The translations under genes and the position numbers were made by a program. Source: Paraphysomonas bandaiensis (lineage: Eukaryota > Protista > Chrysophyceae). Taken from it: 5,740 nt of DNA. The notes under the pieces were generated by a model. The model was not told the origin of the DNA and did no database searches. It worked only from the letters and a program-made list of their open reading frames with translations. Shown here piece by piece: positions 1 to 5,740 of this stretch. The stretch is taken from assembly GCA_965644295.1 (NCBI GenBank), contig CBFFRP010000538.1:1-5740 (forward strand), given 5' to 3'. Position 1 is the stretch's first letter. Each line of letters begins with the position of its first letter.

Positions 1-1101
1 GACAAGGGCAAACACACCGTCAATGTCTTCGTGTGTATGTCCAACTGGAAGGCGTGTCAACACAACTTTGTCAACCAAACGACATGCCACTAAGAGCGCA
101 CATATGCTATAAAATTCCACATTAGCGTTCTCTGATCCCCCATCTATTTGATGGTATATTACACTCGGCAGCTTCTTTCCATGACACAGGTAGTGGTGCT
201 CCAGCGCTAGCAACCACGTATGAATAGCGAGATTAGCTCCCCCTGCACAATTAGCGAATGTCCGGAAGATCATCATCTGATGTCCATGCATCAAAACTCC
301 TTGAAGATGCTGTTTAATATGCCGATCCGGGTGCTTATTGTTTCCAAACCACGGTAGAAAGCAATGATTCTGCATCATTCCGTCCATGATGGTGGAGAGG
401 AACATCTCTTTGTTTAGAGTAGCATCCAAGCGGCGGTCATAATATTTTCGACGCTCCTGCATTATGGACATGCGATGCAGCGCATACAAATTCGTGACTT
501 CCTCCCTTCCAGCCCTGTCACGGAATTTCCGTCGCTTCTCACTCAAATATGTACAGAGACTGCAGTGCCCGCAACTGGATTTGAACTTGCGGATTTTGCA
601 ATACGAAAATGTGTTCCCCCAAATCTTCTTGAAAGTGTTAAAGCATACTGGACTTTGTTTTAGACTTTCCATGTCGAAAATATACTCGTTGTATACATCA
701 ACTTTCCGTGTCGGATCAAGATGAATTTCGGAGTTACGATCAGGTGGTTGGTCACCAACCAAAGAAAAATAGTACTGAAGCCAGGATGCACACATCAGCG
801 AGACTTCAGTCTGTGGTAATCGCAAGCTTCCCAGCTGTTCATTGGTAAGAAATATTCCAAATTCCTCGGAGAATTTCTTGATCTTAGACTCGGGAAGCAT
901 TTGAGGCGATATAGACGGAGCCGGGGTTAAGTCGCTCAAACAGTTAACATTTCCCTTCTTCAATCTCCTCACAAGATCTTCAACATACCAATGAGAGATG
1001 CTGTATGCACGTGCAAAACCTCTTCTACACACCATATGCATATTTTCTCCTTCTCCTATTAAAAGAACAAACTTGTATTTCTTTTTCTCGGTCACGTGAA
1101 C
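1..1101 (-). CDS. Main exon of a DDD-type DNA transposase-like protein (Sola-like / DUF7869-like), 3'-truncated by the window edge
   Basis: Manual translation gives 367 codons with no stop: VHVTEKKKYKF..VCRRGFARAYSIS..W..YFSLVGDQPP..EIHL..FKKIWGNTF..CGHCSLC..ERRKYYDRR..FLSTIMDGM..HLQGVLMHG..GANLAIH..LPSVIYHQIDGGSENAN..LTRLPVGHTHEDIDGVFALV. Candidate catalytic Asp codons at 384-382, 144-142 and 21-19. Absent from the ORF track because it has no stop within the window. Family assignment is from remembered motifs, not a search. Confidence 0.88.
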
Positions 1102-1248
1102 CTAGCGAACTATATAAGTATATATATATAATATAGATATAAATATTAAACTAATAGAAATTGAAACTAAACAGAGGTCCGTAGAGCAATTAATACTAAT
1201 ATCCTACTATATTTATCGCTGCGAATAATAGTACTATATACTACTTAC
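1102..1248 (-). other. Spliceosomal intron, 147 nt, phase 0
   Basis: CAA|GTAAGT donor at 1248 and CGCTAG|GTT acceptor at 1102. The interior is very AT-rich. Splicing joins ..FHTFQ to VHVTEK.. in frame. Confidence 0.85.
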
Positions 1249-1476
1249 TTGAAAAGTATGAAACTTTGCTAATAAGAGATCCTTTCTCTCGTCTCTTTTC
1301 AAACGACGAACTTCCTCCATACAATAAAAGTAAAGCCGCCTAGCTGCAAACGTCGTCTCCGTATTTCCACTTCTATATAACATGCATCCTTCACACGCAC
1401 ATGTCATCATGCACATAATGCAGCAACAGGCGGACGTAAAGGTCTTCAGCATGGCAACAGGATCTTTCATGTTAAT
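1249..1476 (-). CDS. Cys-rich N-terminal exon of the transposase-like gene (76 codons)
   Basis: INMKDPVAMLKTFTSACCCIMCMMTCACEGC..KFHTFQ, preceded by the acceptor TATTGTACAG at 1477. Overlaps track ORF 1234..1470, whose ATG at 1470 is an alternative start. Confidence 0.78.
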
Positions 1477-1568
1477 CTGTACAATATATATACTTTTTGT
1501 TAATGTACTATTTTAGAAGAAATATACATTTACTTTCTGCGCACAGCAGGATACACAGGATAATATAA

Positions 1569-2281
1569 CATTATATATATACAGTATAACATACAAGTAA
1601 GTTCTGTCGACATCTTTTCATGACAACCCTGCGCCAATAGCAGTCGCCACCGCTACTGACACGAGTGGATATCACAGGTGACCGAACAAACAAGTATAAC
1701 ATATGAAGGTTGGGAAGGTCACATCTTTTCATGACGACACTGTCCCAATAGCAGTCGCCACCGCTATTGAGGCGAGTTGAAGTCACAGGTTTCCTTCCGC
1801 AACCATTATATATACAGTATAACATACAAGTAAGTTCTGTCGACATCTTTTCATGACAACCCTGCGCCAATAGCAGTCGCCACCGCTACTGACACGAGTG
1901 GATATCACAGGTGACCGAACAAACAAGTATAACATATGAAGGTTGGGAAGGTCACATCTTTTCATGACGACACTGTCCCAATAGCAGTCGCCACCGCTAT
2001 TGAGGCGAGTTGAAGTCACAGGTTTCCTTCCGCAACCATTATATATACAGTATAACATACAAGTAAGTTCTGTCGACATCTTTTCATGACAACCCTGCGC
2101 CAATAGCAGTCGCCACCGCTACTGACACGAGTGGATATCACAGGTGACCGAACAAACAAGTATAACATATGAAGGTTGGGAAGGTCACATCTTTTCATGA
2201 CGACACTGTCCCAATAGCAGTCGCCACCGCTATTGAGGCGAGTTGAAGTCACAGGTTTCCTTCCACAACCATTATATATAC
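1569..2281. repeat. Tandem array of 3 x 233 bp, each unit a dimer of related A and B subunits (111/122-bp spacing)
   Basis: ACAGTATAACATACAAG at 1581, 1814 and 2047. The only internal difference noticed is g/g/a at 1799/2032/2265. 70-nt cores: A at 1610-1679, 1843-1912, 2076-2145; B at 1721-1790, 1954-2023, 2187-2256. A and B differ at 10 of 70 positions. Confidence 0.97.
1601..2270 (-). ncRNA. Candidate array of six structured RNAs (long hairpins), probably intronic
   Basis: Core A: GUGUCAGUAGCGGU-GGCG-ACUGCUAUUGGCGC forms 14 contiguous pairs (4 G.U), plus a lower stem UGUGAU/GUCAUG. Core B: CUCAAUAGCGGU-GGCG-ACUGCUAUUGGG plus UGUGAC/GUCAUG. A and B show compensatory and wobble-preserving differences. 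Confidence 0.55.
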
Positions 2282-2323
2282 GTACGTACATGTAATCAAG
2301 CATAACAGACATTTATGGCATAC

Positions 2324-2377
2324 AGGTTCGTGTCGTCGTACCTTCTTGTATTCCCAGATGCCAGATGACATCACATG
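2324..2377 (-). CDS. Putative upstream exon of the transposase-like gene (HVMSSGIWEYKKVRRHEP)
   Basis: Acceptor AATAGTAG at 2378. Two phase-0 donors, AAG|GTACGA (2341) and CCT|GTATGC (2323), are both in frame with the 1476 exon. Confidence 0.45.
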
Positions 2378-2456: not shown

Positions 2457-2554
2457 GCAAGTGATGACCGACAAAACACAGCATAACATATAGAAAAACA
2501 CGTACAAAAAATTTGAATTTGACCAAAAACACCCCACAAGAGCATCGAACTCGC

Positions 2555-2642
2555 GTCATGAGTGTGTGGTGAGGACGGCGGTGTGCATCACAACACCGCA
2601 ACCACACTGCACGAGCAGTGCTTACGACACGCACATCATGAC
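2555..2642. other. Nested inverted repeats in the divergent intergenic region
   Basis: GTCATGA(2555-61)/TCATGAC(2636-42); GTGTGGT(2564-70)/ACCACAC(2601-07); GCGGTGT(2578-84)/ACACCGC(2593-99); CACTGC-ACGA-GCAGTG(2605-20). Confidence 0.6.
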
Positions 2643-2664
2643 CATAATACATATGCATAACTTA

Positions 2665-2697
2665 ACACACACACACACACATACACATACATATATA
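2665..2697. repeat. (AC)8 microsatellite grading into ATAC/AT repeats, with a TATA-like TATATA at 2692-2697
   Basis: Read directly from the sequence. It lies ~45-80 nt upstream of the ATG at 2743. The TATA role is inference. Confidence 0.8.
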
Positions 2698-2742
2698 GAG
2701 TGAATCACTTAACAATGATAACAAACTTTAAGTCTGCAGGCA

Positions 2743-5601
2743 ATGACAACTTCTTCTGATGATGAGTGGGATACATGTAATGTGTTCAGTGAGTTTGATC
2801 AAGATCGGTCAAATGCTGCCTATGTGTGTCGCTCATGTGAGACAACATTTCGAGAGCTGGACAAAGGGTGCTCATCTGTGAAGAAATTGTGTCCGAAGTG
2901 TAACAACGAGGGGCTAGTAAAGTCAATGGCTGTATTTTTCCCTAATTCCACTCACCCTCACGGTACGTTGCTGCACAATGACCTGGTACTCTGTGACGAT
3001 ATCACTACCTATAGGTGATGATGAGGAGCGTCTTGAAAAGGACGACGTGGAGGACCAAGGGGGGCGATACCCTACTGCCCATGTTGCTGATGATGCAGGT
3101 CCTTCTTCTCCTTACCATCACGGTACGTTGCTGTCAATCGATCTTATCTAGTATACGCTGTATTGACATTATTTTGTACCATAGGTGATGAGGAGCGTCT
3201 TGAAAAGGACGACGTGGAGGACCAAGGGGGGCGATACCCAGCTGCCCATGTTGCAGATGATGCAGGTCCTTCTTCTCCTTACCATCACGGTACGTTGCTG
3301 TCAATCGATCATATATATAGTATACGCTGTATTGACATTATTTTGTACCATAGGTGATGAGGAGCGTCTTGAAAAGGACGACGTGGAGGACCAAGGGGGG
3401 CGATACCCTACTGCCCATGTTGCTGATGATGCAGGTCCTTCTTCTCCTTACCATCACGGTACGTTGCTGTCAATCGATCATATATATAGTATACGCTGTA
3501 TTGACATTATTTTGTACCATAGGTGATGAGGAGCGTCTTGAAAAGGACGACGTGGAGGACCAAGGGGGGCGATACCCTACTGCCCATGTTGCAGATGATG
3601 CAGGTCCTTCTTCTCCTTACCATCACGGTACGTTGCTGTCAATCGATCATATATATAGTATACGCTGTATTGACATTATTTCGTACCATAGGTGATGAGG
3701 AGCGTCTTGAAAAGGACGACGTGGAGGACCAAGGGGGGCGATACCCTGCTGCCCATGTTGCAGATGATGCAGATAATATTACATCTGCGTCCCCTGTTGA
3801 CCGGTTTGTGCCTTCTTTCATGGTATCAGACATGTCCATCACGATTGAAGTTGGGGGCGTTACCCAGACCTTTGTTCGAAAAAGGTTCAAAATGGACGCA
3901 GGGAACTCGGTGCTCCAGCTATACATAGATTTGGAGTTTCTAGATAAATCTCCTCTTCTGTTTCCATATATGATACTGTCGGCGCACTTCAACCGATCCA
4001 CAAAACAGCTGGCCCTTACCATGACTGTTGTTCGGGATAAGAGAGGACTCAAATACGTCGCAGTGTGCATTCTGCGCACAAAATGTACGAAACCCCGGTA
4101 CGATGTCCTTCTGTATAAGATTTCGGATGGCAATTGCTTCCGTGTGACCGGTGTAAAGAAGTTTCGCGATGAGTATGACTATCTCTTTGACGAGGAATTT
4201 GATCCCTTCATTGTGCGTGATGCAGCGATATTGTATTTTCATGAGCAGGGACTTGTGTACGATCCGCGCGGTGGAGGTCCTAACAAGGATGAATCCGGAA
4301 AACCCTGCGTCGATGGGACCGAAAACCCATTCGGAACAGTTTCAGGTAAGAGAACTAGAACGCAGCGAAAGACTTTCGACATTGCTCCGCCTACGAGGAA
4401 GAAGAATTCTACGAAGAAGTCGACAAAGGATAAGAAAGTTGCAGCGGTGATGTTCTGATTATTGTTGTGTGCTGTTACTATACACTGTACTAACTGCTGT
4501 GTGTAGTGCAATGGGAAGAAGAATGTCGTCGAAATTCGTGGCGACATATCCAACGACGACTCGGAGGTACCACGAAAGCGCACGAGCAGGGTAAGTAGTA
4601 CTGTTCATGAAGATGGTGACGGGGTCGTCGTACGTATATATGCGGTATTGTTCTGATTATTGTTGTGTGCTGTTACTATACATGTACTAACTGCTGTGTG
4701 TAGTGCAATGGGAAGAAGAATGTCGTCGAAATTCGTGGCGACATATCCAACGACGACTCGGAGGTACCACGAAAGCGCACGAGCAGGGTAAGTAGTACTG
4801 TTCATGAAGAAGGTGACGGGGTCGTCGTACGTATATATGCGGTATTGTTCTGATTATTGTTGTGTGCTGTTACTATACATGTACTAACTGCTGTGTGTAG
4901 TGCAATGGGAAGAAGAATGTCGTCGAAATTCGTGGCGACATATCCAACGACGACTCGGAGGTACCACGAAAGCGCACGAGCAGGGTAAGTAGTACTGTTC
5001 ATGAAGATGGTGACGGGGTCGTCGTACGTATATATGCGGTATTGTTCTGATTATTGTTGTGCGTTGTTACTATAATACACTGTACTAACTGTGTAGTATA
5101 ATGGTGTAGGAGAAGTACAAAGGGAAGAAGAATGTCGTCGAAATTCGTGGCGACATATCCAACGACGACTCGGAGGAAGAGGTACCACGAAAGCACACGA
5201 GCAGGGACAGTAGTACTGTTCATGAAGATGGTGACGGGGTCGTCGAATCTCAGCAGAAAGCGGATCTGATACCTCCCGCTGTTGCTGAACTTCGTCAGGA
5301 AATGATGTCCGGACTAGCAGAACTTCGTGATCTTTTAATGAGAAAAAATGATGATCCTCCACCTGCTTATGATCCTCCACCTACTAGTACTGCGCCCCCA
5401 ACGGCTGTAGCCGCGTCGTCTCAGAGCATAGGTACTAATACTACTAGTGTAAGTAGTAGTGGTGAAGATAGCTTTATGCGTATGCATTGTATCCAAAACC
5501 AGGCTATTCGGTTGGAGCGTTTGCAATCTCAAGAGAGGCAAATGCAGCTATATGAGAATATGATATTACAAAACACAAGTCGTGGCAGGGCCAACTTGTA
5601 A
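2743..5601 (+). CDS. Spliced gene of unknown function, ~710-750 aa: zinc ribbon, acidic 35-aa repeats, globular domain, basic stretch, 41-aa repeats, helical/Pro-Ser-rich tail
   Basis: Exon model: 2743-2962, 3015-3122, 3185-3289, 3354-3458, 3523-3627, 3692-~4446 (or 4437; weak donor), 4507-4629, 4704-4826, 4901-5023 (alternative ends 4590/4787/4984), 5110-5601. Introns 1-5 are phase 1, G|GTACGT..ATAG|, 52-64 nt. Later introns are phase 0 with TACTAAC (4488, 4685, 4882, 5083). The frame is open throughout. CRSC-x17-CPKC lies in exon 1. Without splicing at ~4446 the frame stops at 4458. Confidence 0.75.
3011..3772 (+). repeat. Tandem array of ~4.5 x 169 bp, each unit a 105-nt exon plus a 64-nt intron
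   Basis: ATAG|GTGATGA with exon starts at 3015, 3185, 3354, 3523 and 3692. Encodes GDEERLEKDDVEDQGGRYP(T/A)AHVADDAGPSSPYHH. Confidence 0.96.
4444..5245 (+). repeat. Tandem array of ~4 x 197 bp, each unit an intron with TACTAAC plus a 123-nt (or 84-nt) exon
   Basis: GTGTAG|TGCAATGGG at 4507, 4704 and 4901. The diverged fourth copy begins the last exon at 5110. Encodes CNGKKNVVEIRGDISNDDSEVPRKRTSRVSSTVHE(D/E)GDGVV. Confidence 0.96.
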
Positions 5602-5610: not shown

Positions 5611-5703
5611 TATTGCTAATAACAACTATAATTGCAACTTTTTCTTTATCTTTAACCTCTTAGATACAAATTACAGTAAAATAATAACTCAATACTTAGA
5701 TAT

Positions 5704-5734
5704 GAAACCTGGTGAAATCGCTTTACCAGGTTTT
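5704..5734. other. Strong hairpin / inverted repeat
   Basis: AAACCTGGTGAA(5705-16)-ATCGC-TTTACCAGGTTT(5722-33): 12 pairs including one G.T. Confidence 0.75.
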
Positions 5735-5740
5735 GGTATT

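Follow-up and report, generated by a model that had tools for sequence, protein, structure and literature searches.

The window, meaning the whole stretch of DNA analysed here, is the complete 5,740-nt contig C538 of a 62.5-Mb assembly and carries two divergent genes of a DNA transposon, a transposase gene on the minus strand and ORF2 on the plus strand. The GT..AG joints found on both genes among the contigs of run X1 identify this run as RNA, and the unspliced forms in run X10 identify that run as DNA. A 2,524-nt X1 contig joins positions 2401-2342 to 1476-1247 and 1099-4 and extends past the contig end, which resolves the minus-strand gene exon by exon. Its first exon (2342-2401) is non-coding and 60 nt long in this contig, the true start lying perhaps farther upstream, and is followed by an 865-nt GT..AG intron (1477-2341, minus strand), whose joint 1476|2342 has ends CT..AC in X1 and is missing from the DNA run X10. 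Exon 2 (1247-1476; ORF 1234-1470) provides the start codon at 1470 and encodes a Cys-rich N-terminal segment, and a second intron of 147 nt (1100-1246; joint 1099|1247, ends CT..AC in X1) precedes the transposase exon proper (1-1099), which encodes a DUF7869 domain (Pfam PF25273, E = 1.6e-21) and leaves the contig, at least 1.1 kb more of the mRNA lying beyond it. At E ≤ 1e-20 the transposase has 167 homologues.

Within the first intron lies a tandem array of 3.04 copies of a 233-nt unit (1574-2281, minus strand), found by TRF and a repeat finder, with units 99–100% identical to one another. Given the joint 1476|2342 and the start codon at 1470, the whole array is contained in a 5′UTR intron and is transcribed in sense orientation. 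The sequence-only reading had placed the array inside a transposase gene and had anticipated transcription across it in the transposase sense; both points now have RNA support, from the spliced joint in X1 and from the array unit itself, which appears in RNA assemblies. Of the intron ends that it predicted, the acceptor at 1476 is correct, whereas the donor at 2377 falls 35 nt from the actual junction at 2342|2341. Its statement that the array yields no frame-preserving exon also holds, as the unit length of 233 nt is not divisible by 3 and the RNA has the array removed with the intron. We considered the array as a coding exon, since one minus-strand frame is open through the unit, and rejected this on the grounds of the 233-nt period and the splicing.

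Each unit reads, on the minus strand, as hairpin B, a linker, hairpin A and a TA-rich tail, the two hairpins being mutually related imperfect stems of about 100 nt. Covariance-model hits and folding place hairpin A at 1582-1689, 1815-1922 and 2048-2155 and hairpin B at 1692-1800, 1925-2033 and 2158-2266, all on the minus strand, so that the description of six tandem hairpins in two alternating types is accurate, with one A and one B per unit. Hairpin A has about 35 bp, including 6 G.U pairs and no A.C mismatches, and its upper stem comprises the 14 bp with 4 G.U pairs that had been described from the sequence. Hairpin B has about 36 bp, with a basal stem of its own of 11 Watson-Crick bp. Overall, A and B are 83% identical, the alignable core of 70 nt containing 10 differences, and their outer stems are unlike each other in sequence while each is self-complementary. 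The pair changes from A to B proposed earlier can be found in the alignment: C-G to A-U at columns 32/76, G.U to A-U at 45/66 and U.G to C-G at 28/84, together with the change from G-C to C-G and that from U.G to C.A, both in the register of A. The sequence on either side of the array (1477-1573 and 2282-2420, intron flanks included) has no comparable structure.

Comparison with shuffled controls supports stable folding of the transcribed strand. One 233-nt unit folds at −87.4 kcal/mol on the minus strand (z −5.0; matched by 0 of 200 shuffles) against −57.9 kcal/mol on the plus strand (z −2.1), and the strand bias of the unit is due to hairpin A. This hairpin reaches −38.4 kcal/mol on the minus strand (z −2.8) and only −19.1 on the plus strand (z 0.0); with 6 G.U pairs and no A.C mismatches, it therefore folds on the transcribed strand only. 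Hairpin B, by contrast, folds at −41.3 kcal/mol on the minus strand (z −3.9) and −36.4 on the plus strand (z −3.7), so that the expected strand bias exists for A and is lacking for B. On the transcribed strand, A, B and the whole unit each fold stably, as a stem-loop precursor would. In A, G.U pairs outnumber A.C mismatches 6:0 (nominal P about 0.03), and a sense-strand C-to-T and A-to-G bias linked to transcription could also yield such an excess.

The original description of the six hairpins as covarying does not stand, the six being three near-identical copies of two sequences, and this leaves a single independent comparison, that of A with B. We placed the 10 core differences at random and counted the pairs retained: going from A to B, 22 of 24 pairs are kept, which 2.7% of random placements equal (P 0.027), and the same test from B to A gives P 0.38. 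All 10 differences sit in paired columns, and two pairs have changed on both sides. In an alignment of 22 distinct subunits, pairing holds in 97% of cells, and in the common core a double-sided change occurs in only one pair; covariation measures robust to relatedness, computed on pair and type counts for these 22 subunits, perform no better than shuffles. Covariation support for kept pairing is thus marginal. In decayed copies, 29 substitutions break pairs and 11 keep them, a ratio of about what neutral decay predicts, with no constraint after insertion; lost constraint is to be expected in dead transposon copies, and these counts therefore say little about the master copy. A single anecdote in the other direction is a copy on contig C24 that gained matching insertions in both arms, which lengthened the stem.

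In the RNA data the array unit appears as a 263-nt contig (233 + 30 nt, a collapsed repeat) in X1 and in X9, a marine metatranscriptome, and the unique flanks of the array-bearing intron are uncovered in the contigs of both. Contig depths are crude, a rough guide that cannot rank expression, and the ratios drawn from them are therefore weak evidence: the array unit has a depth of 239 in X1 RNA and 6,163 in X10 DNA (ratio 0.04), the non-coding flank variant of the derivative described below 38 and 1,533 (ratio 0.025), and the transposase exons 268 and 328 (ratio 0.8), which puts array RNA depth per DNA copy about 20-fold under that of the exons. With that caveat, the array signal fits read-through of many derivative copies, and accumulation of hairpin RNA is not needed to explain it. 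The hairpins are real, are transcribed in the sense in which they fold, and are then removed by splicing.

Comparison of complete copies elsewhere in the genome reveals the ends of the element. The window stops 10 nt before the end of the right terminal inverted repeat (TIR), so that positions 5726-5740 are the first 15 nt of a perfect 25-nt TIR, AAGTCGAGGTAATACCAAAACCTGG (window 5701-5740 region; derivative copies C288, C146, C263 and C432), and 4 of 5 complete derivative copies are flanked by 3-bp target site duplications (TSDs), namely TAG, GAA, AAC and CCT, the flanks of the fifth being ambiguous. A subterminal AAACCTGGTGA adjoins both TIRs (window 5706-5716 and the left end of the derivative) and resembles the 5′ hairpin bases, AAACCTGTGA in B (1780-1789) and CACCTGTGA in A (1670-1678), a likeness too short to judge. 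The commonest form of the family, in which most array copies reside, is a 6.87-kb non-autonomous derivative (C288 local 4590-11454 and at least 5 other contigs), identified by copy comparison, that lacks the transposase and most of ORF2; four copies are at least 97.5% identical over their full length, the best pair, C288 and C146, reaching 99.9%. The promoter region, first exon, 5′ splice site and hairpin array (3.5–5.5 units) are retained in the derivative, and it also bears a satellite of about 1.8 kb with a 23/46-nt period and a 225-nt array. Variants specific to it lie at 2314, 2321 and 2345, with indels at 2350-2358. Genome-wide, there are at least 67 occurrences of the 233-nt unit, array copy number varies from 3 to 5.5 units between element copies, and a covariance model of the hairpin (R1) finds 115 hairpins on 16 contigs, all in the array-bearing family, among the best 150 scored of about 19,000 first-look candidates, a depth of search that weak matches could escape. 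Near-identical units, head to tail and in varying number, thus lie within an element that has TIRs and TSDs at its ends.

Two old deletion derivatives preserve earlier states of the array. One (C26; L037 8545-9048) has a single A+B unit at 86–89% identity, the other (C297; L038 8622-8967) one hairpin at 77–87% identity, broken by a deletion. Both retain a homologue of 1404-1573 beside the hairpins, next to the start of exon 2, and in both a homologue of about 56-131 of the window is fused directly to about 1404. These states give the order of growth, in which one hairpin was duplicated to A+B and the 233-nt unit was then amplified. Two further tandem arrays in the window, and the satellite and 225-nt array added in the derivative, point to a tendency to tandem duplication. 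The plus-strand gene has RNA-confirmed GT..AG introns at 2962-3013, 3627-3690 and 4590-5108, some of which lie inside 169-nt and 197-nt exon-plus-intron tandem arrays; the joint 4589|5109, seen in two runs, skips 2.6 units and could be due to skipped exons, to variation in copy number or to a collapsed assembly.

The structure conservation that might have been looked for at homologous loci is absent both from paralogues in the same genome and from five metagenome loci: among the best 150 candidates of its own genome, R1 places no hairpins beside paralogous transposases of 45–62% identity, and with filters off it returns only noise (best 12 bits, E 0.5) from the five metagenome loci with transposases 50–68% identical, where tandem- and inverted-repeat scans likewise find no hairpin array upstream. 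The array is therefore specific to this transposon family. One of the metagenome relatives (L052) is homologous to the element as a whole: its transposase (499-2007, minus strand) is 59% identical, and the product of its head-to-head accessory gene (2633-5194, plus strand) shares 29% identity with the ORF2 core (E 2e-16). The metagenome relatives keep this head-to-head arrangement of the two genes, and the transposon group shows tandem arrays in the partner gene more than once, as in L051, where a 75-nt unit is repeated 8 times within the divergent gene (4146-4756). Parts of the window are also found in coded organisms B and C.

Nor does the array belong to a known RNA family. A scan of the whole window against Rfam at E up to 1 gives sub-threshold noise from miRNA models, the best match over the array being MIR7526, whose 22 bits (E 0.6) fall short of its gathering score of 110, and a scan for tRNA and tmRNA found none. 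Matches in its own genome to both arms of A at up to 3 mismatches are confined to arrays with one exception, at 14144-14166 of contig C425 (G000), which aligns with an arm of hairpin A over 23 nt at 3 mismatches and is the sole match outside the family; about 0.1 such matches are expected, and this one is consistent with chance.

The proposal that the element is Sola-type is doubtful. Sola elements reportedly make 4-bp TSDs (Bao et al. 2009), and Zator elements have 3-bp TSDs, the length found here. The transposase fragment in the window, where the catalytic domain is partial, matches only DUF7869 in Pfam and has no PF07592 match, and in one Atlas cluster of DUF7869 proteins 11% of members also carry PF07592 (DDE_Tnp_ISAZ013). 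The 3-bp TSD, the occasional co-occurrence of DUF7869 with an ISAzo13 DDE domain and the identification of ISAzo13-like elements as prokaryotic partners of Zator (PMC5718144) together make the Sola assignment doubtful, and the element looks Zator-like.

A short sequence motif accompanies the hairpins. AGYATAACA occurs 8 times against 0.13 expected, precedes every hairpin, and is found outside the array at 2299-2307 and 2480-2488. In addition, a solitary 31-nt copy of the A-B linker containing AGCATAACA lies between the divergent genes (2465-2495, plus strand); its local alignment scores 33, and those of shuffled sequence at most 26. This copy may be a shared cis element, or it may have seeded the duplication.

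We lean slightly towards the view that the array is an expanding, hairpin-forming intronic quasi-palindromic repeat without a dedicated product. A lineage-specific tandem amplification of the 233-nt module, made of two related quasi-palindromes, would have taken place in the 5′UTR intron of the transposase gene of a recently active TIR transposon. The (TA)n stretch at the border of each unit would be where unequal exchange or slippage lets the array grow; exon-intron units in the neighbouring gene would have been duplicated in the same way, and the array would be carried passively by transposition, also in the multiplied 6.9-kb non-autonomous derivative. The hairpins would form in the pre-mRNA or the excised intron with no dedicated small-RNA cassette, and any effect would be incidental and go no further than dicing into siRNAs whose matches are confined to the family itself. 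In favour of this view stand the intron joints seen in RNA and missing from DNA, the near-identical units of varying number, the single-unit and single-hairpin older copies, the tendency to tandem duplication, the lack of hairpins at the related transposase loci scanned, the pair-breaking changes in decayed copies, the low RNA depth of the array (weak evidence) and the absence of an Rfam family, a tRNA or, for the arms of A, a trans target. Counting against this repeat-only reading are the z of −5.0 of the unit, the sense-only fold of A and the pair retention at P 0.027, as are the distinct, self-complementary outer stems and the matching arm insertions on C24; the presence of the array unit in two RNA sets without its intron flanks would also fit stable hairpin RNAs. 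A rival reading is an intron-hosted polycistronic cassette, in which a Dicer-type enzyme would cut each hairpin of about 100 nt after splicing or co-transcriptionally, with putative products serving self-limitation of the family or host silencing of array-bearing copies, or acting as miRNA-like or protein-binding RNAs. We hold such a cassette to be unlikely. Transcription of the sense strand of the array within a spliced intron speaks for it, as do the strand-specific fold with its G.U pairs, the kept A/B pairing (P 0.027) and the occurrence in RNA assemblies from two studies of the array unit and not of the unique intron flanks. Precedents are the intronic miRNAs of Ectocarpus, another stramenopile (PMC4513859), and the miRNA cluster in intron 10 of Sfmbt2, built by the same two-phase tandem growth (PMC3212979). 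Against this, the array has no Rfam match, neither arm of A has a trans target at up to 3 mismatches, searches at paralogous and homologous loci reveal no conserved hairpins, B folds equally on either strand, and RNA depth per DNA copy is low. The G.U excess could moreover reflect a sense-strand C-to-T/A-to-G bias, and the array-bearing derivative is the most successful class of copies, so that no restraint of the family by the array is visible. Processing of the hairpins into small RNAs is possible, and the case for a cassette is weak. A more specific and rather doubtful version would make the element an autonomous transposon with an expandable intronic cassette of hairpin precursors, putatively processed whenever the transposase is transcribed, as an RNAi feedback or decoy; if true, transposase expression would be coupled to the silencing of every array-bearing copy, non-autonomous parasites included.

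The repeated unit could also act at the level of the DNA. Each unit would then multiply a putative protein-binding site downstream of a bidirectional promoter, with the palindromic core or the linker motif as the site and a transcription factor, an enhancer protein, the transposase or an accessory protein as candidate binder, and the RNA fold would be incidental. The recurrence of AGYATAACA at 2299 and 2480 and the 31-nt linker copy at 2465-2495 between the genes fit this proposal, as does B, a nearly strand-symmetric Watson-Crick palindrome of the kind expected of a DNA site, and the hairpin base AAACCTGTGA resembles, by eye, the subterminal AAACCTGGTGA. However, over 3 kb separate the array from each end of the derivative, an internal position unlike that of known subterminal transposase-binding repeats, the array is not conserved in homologous elements, and the stem of A needs G.U pairs, which are meaningless in duplex DNA; we consider a DNA-level role improbable. 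By its layout of hairpin, hinge, hairpin and tail, its intronic position and its tandem arrangement, the unit might further be taken for an intronic snoRNA-type cluster, in which H/ACA-like two-hairpin units or C/D snoRNAs would be released from the intron. Read directly, though, the sequence offers neither an ANANNA box at the hinge nor an ACA placed 3 nt before a 3′ end, and it lacks the RUGAUGA/CUGA pair. Its stems are almost unbroken and contain no pseudouridylation pocket, and no Rfam family matches at E up to 1, so that a snoRNA-type cluster is close to refuted and has only a very small chance of being correct.

Tandem-repeat arrays inside DNA transposons are known from the Tetris foldback element of Drosophila virilis (PMC4079207) and from DTC84, a tandem-repeat-containing MITE of the clam Donax (PMC3879986). 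Like these, the element described here contains head-to-tail units of 100–250 nt within its TIRs in variable copy number, and its array rides in, and can spread with, non-autonomous derivatives. In contrast to both, the array belongs to an intron that is spliced out of the mRNA of the element's own transposase gene, which is expressed; its units are pairs of long hairpins folding on the sense RNA; and no free satellite was seen outside the element, all 115 matches among the best candidates scored falling on the family's 16 contigs.

Transposon-derived hairpin RNAs that trigger silencing include Mu killer of maize and the hairpin siRNAs derived from MITEs. Mu killer lies outside the element, consists of transposase sequence in a rearranged, inverted copy, and has the mRNA as its target. 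As with Mu killer, an inverted-repeat transcript of transposon sequence could feed RNAi against the family; unlike Mu killer, the hairpins here match intron sequence only and sit within the active element. Among tandem miRNA clusters built by repeat amplification is the primate cluster C19MC. A similar case is intron 10 of mouse Sfmbt2, which acquired its intronic miRNA cluster by two-phase tandem repeat amplification (PMC3212979). As in both clusters, a short unit was amplified first and a longer composite later, and the array is intronic, co-transcribed with its host gene and associated with transposable elements; Sfmbt2 and C19MC, however, involve host genes and sequenced mature miRNAs, whereas here the gene is a transposase gene and the hairpins are known from predicted folding and transcription. 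We know of no intronic tandem miRNA clusters described in unicellular stramenopiles. Of the miRNA loci of Ectocarpus, 75% are found within protein-coding genes, chiefly in introns and in host-strand orientation, and intronic hairpins that are already transcribed have been proposed as raw material for new miRNAs (PMC4513859). The present array shares with these loci the stramenopile lineage and the position of intronic hairpins on the strand of the host gene. The Ectocarpus loci differ in that they are hardly ever clustered or tandemly duplicated and do not derive from transposons, and in that their processing has been demonstrated (PMC4513859).

If the array is a mere expanding repeat, it offers a clean, RNA-supported case of an active transposon family that builds tandem arrays, both the intronic hairpin array and the arrays of exon-intron units, with growth steps preserved in older copies. 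Should the hairpins be processed, the array would be an intronic small-RNA cluster borne by a transposon of a unicellular stramenopile, and would open a direct route to the origin of hairpin RNA genes from transcribed introns and to asking whether transposons regulate themselves by RNAi.

A separate GC-rich branched structure occupies positions 2530-2650 of the window, just upstream of the start of ORF2, and is conserved in the derivative; its plus-strand fold is strong, at −45.8 kcal/mol and a z of −4.1, whereas the minus strand reaches a z of only −0.4.
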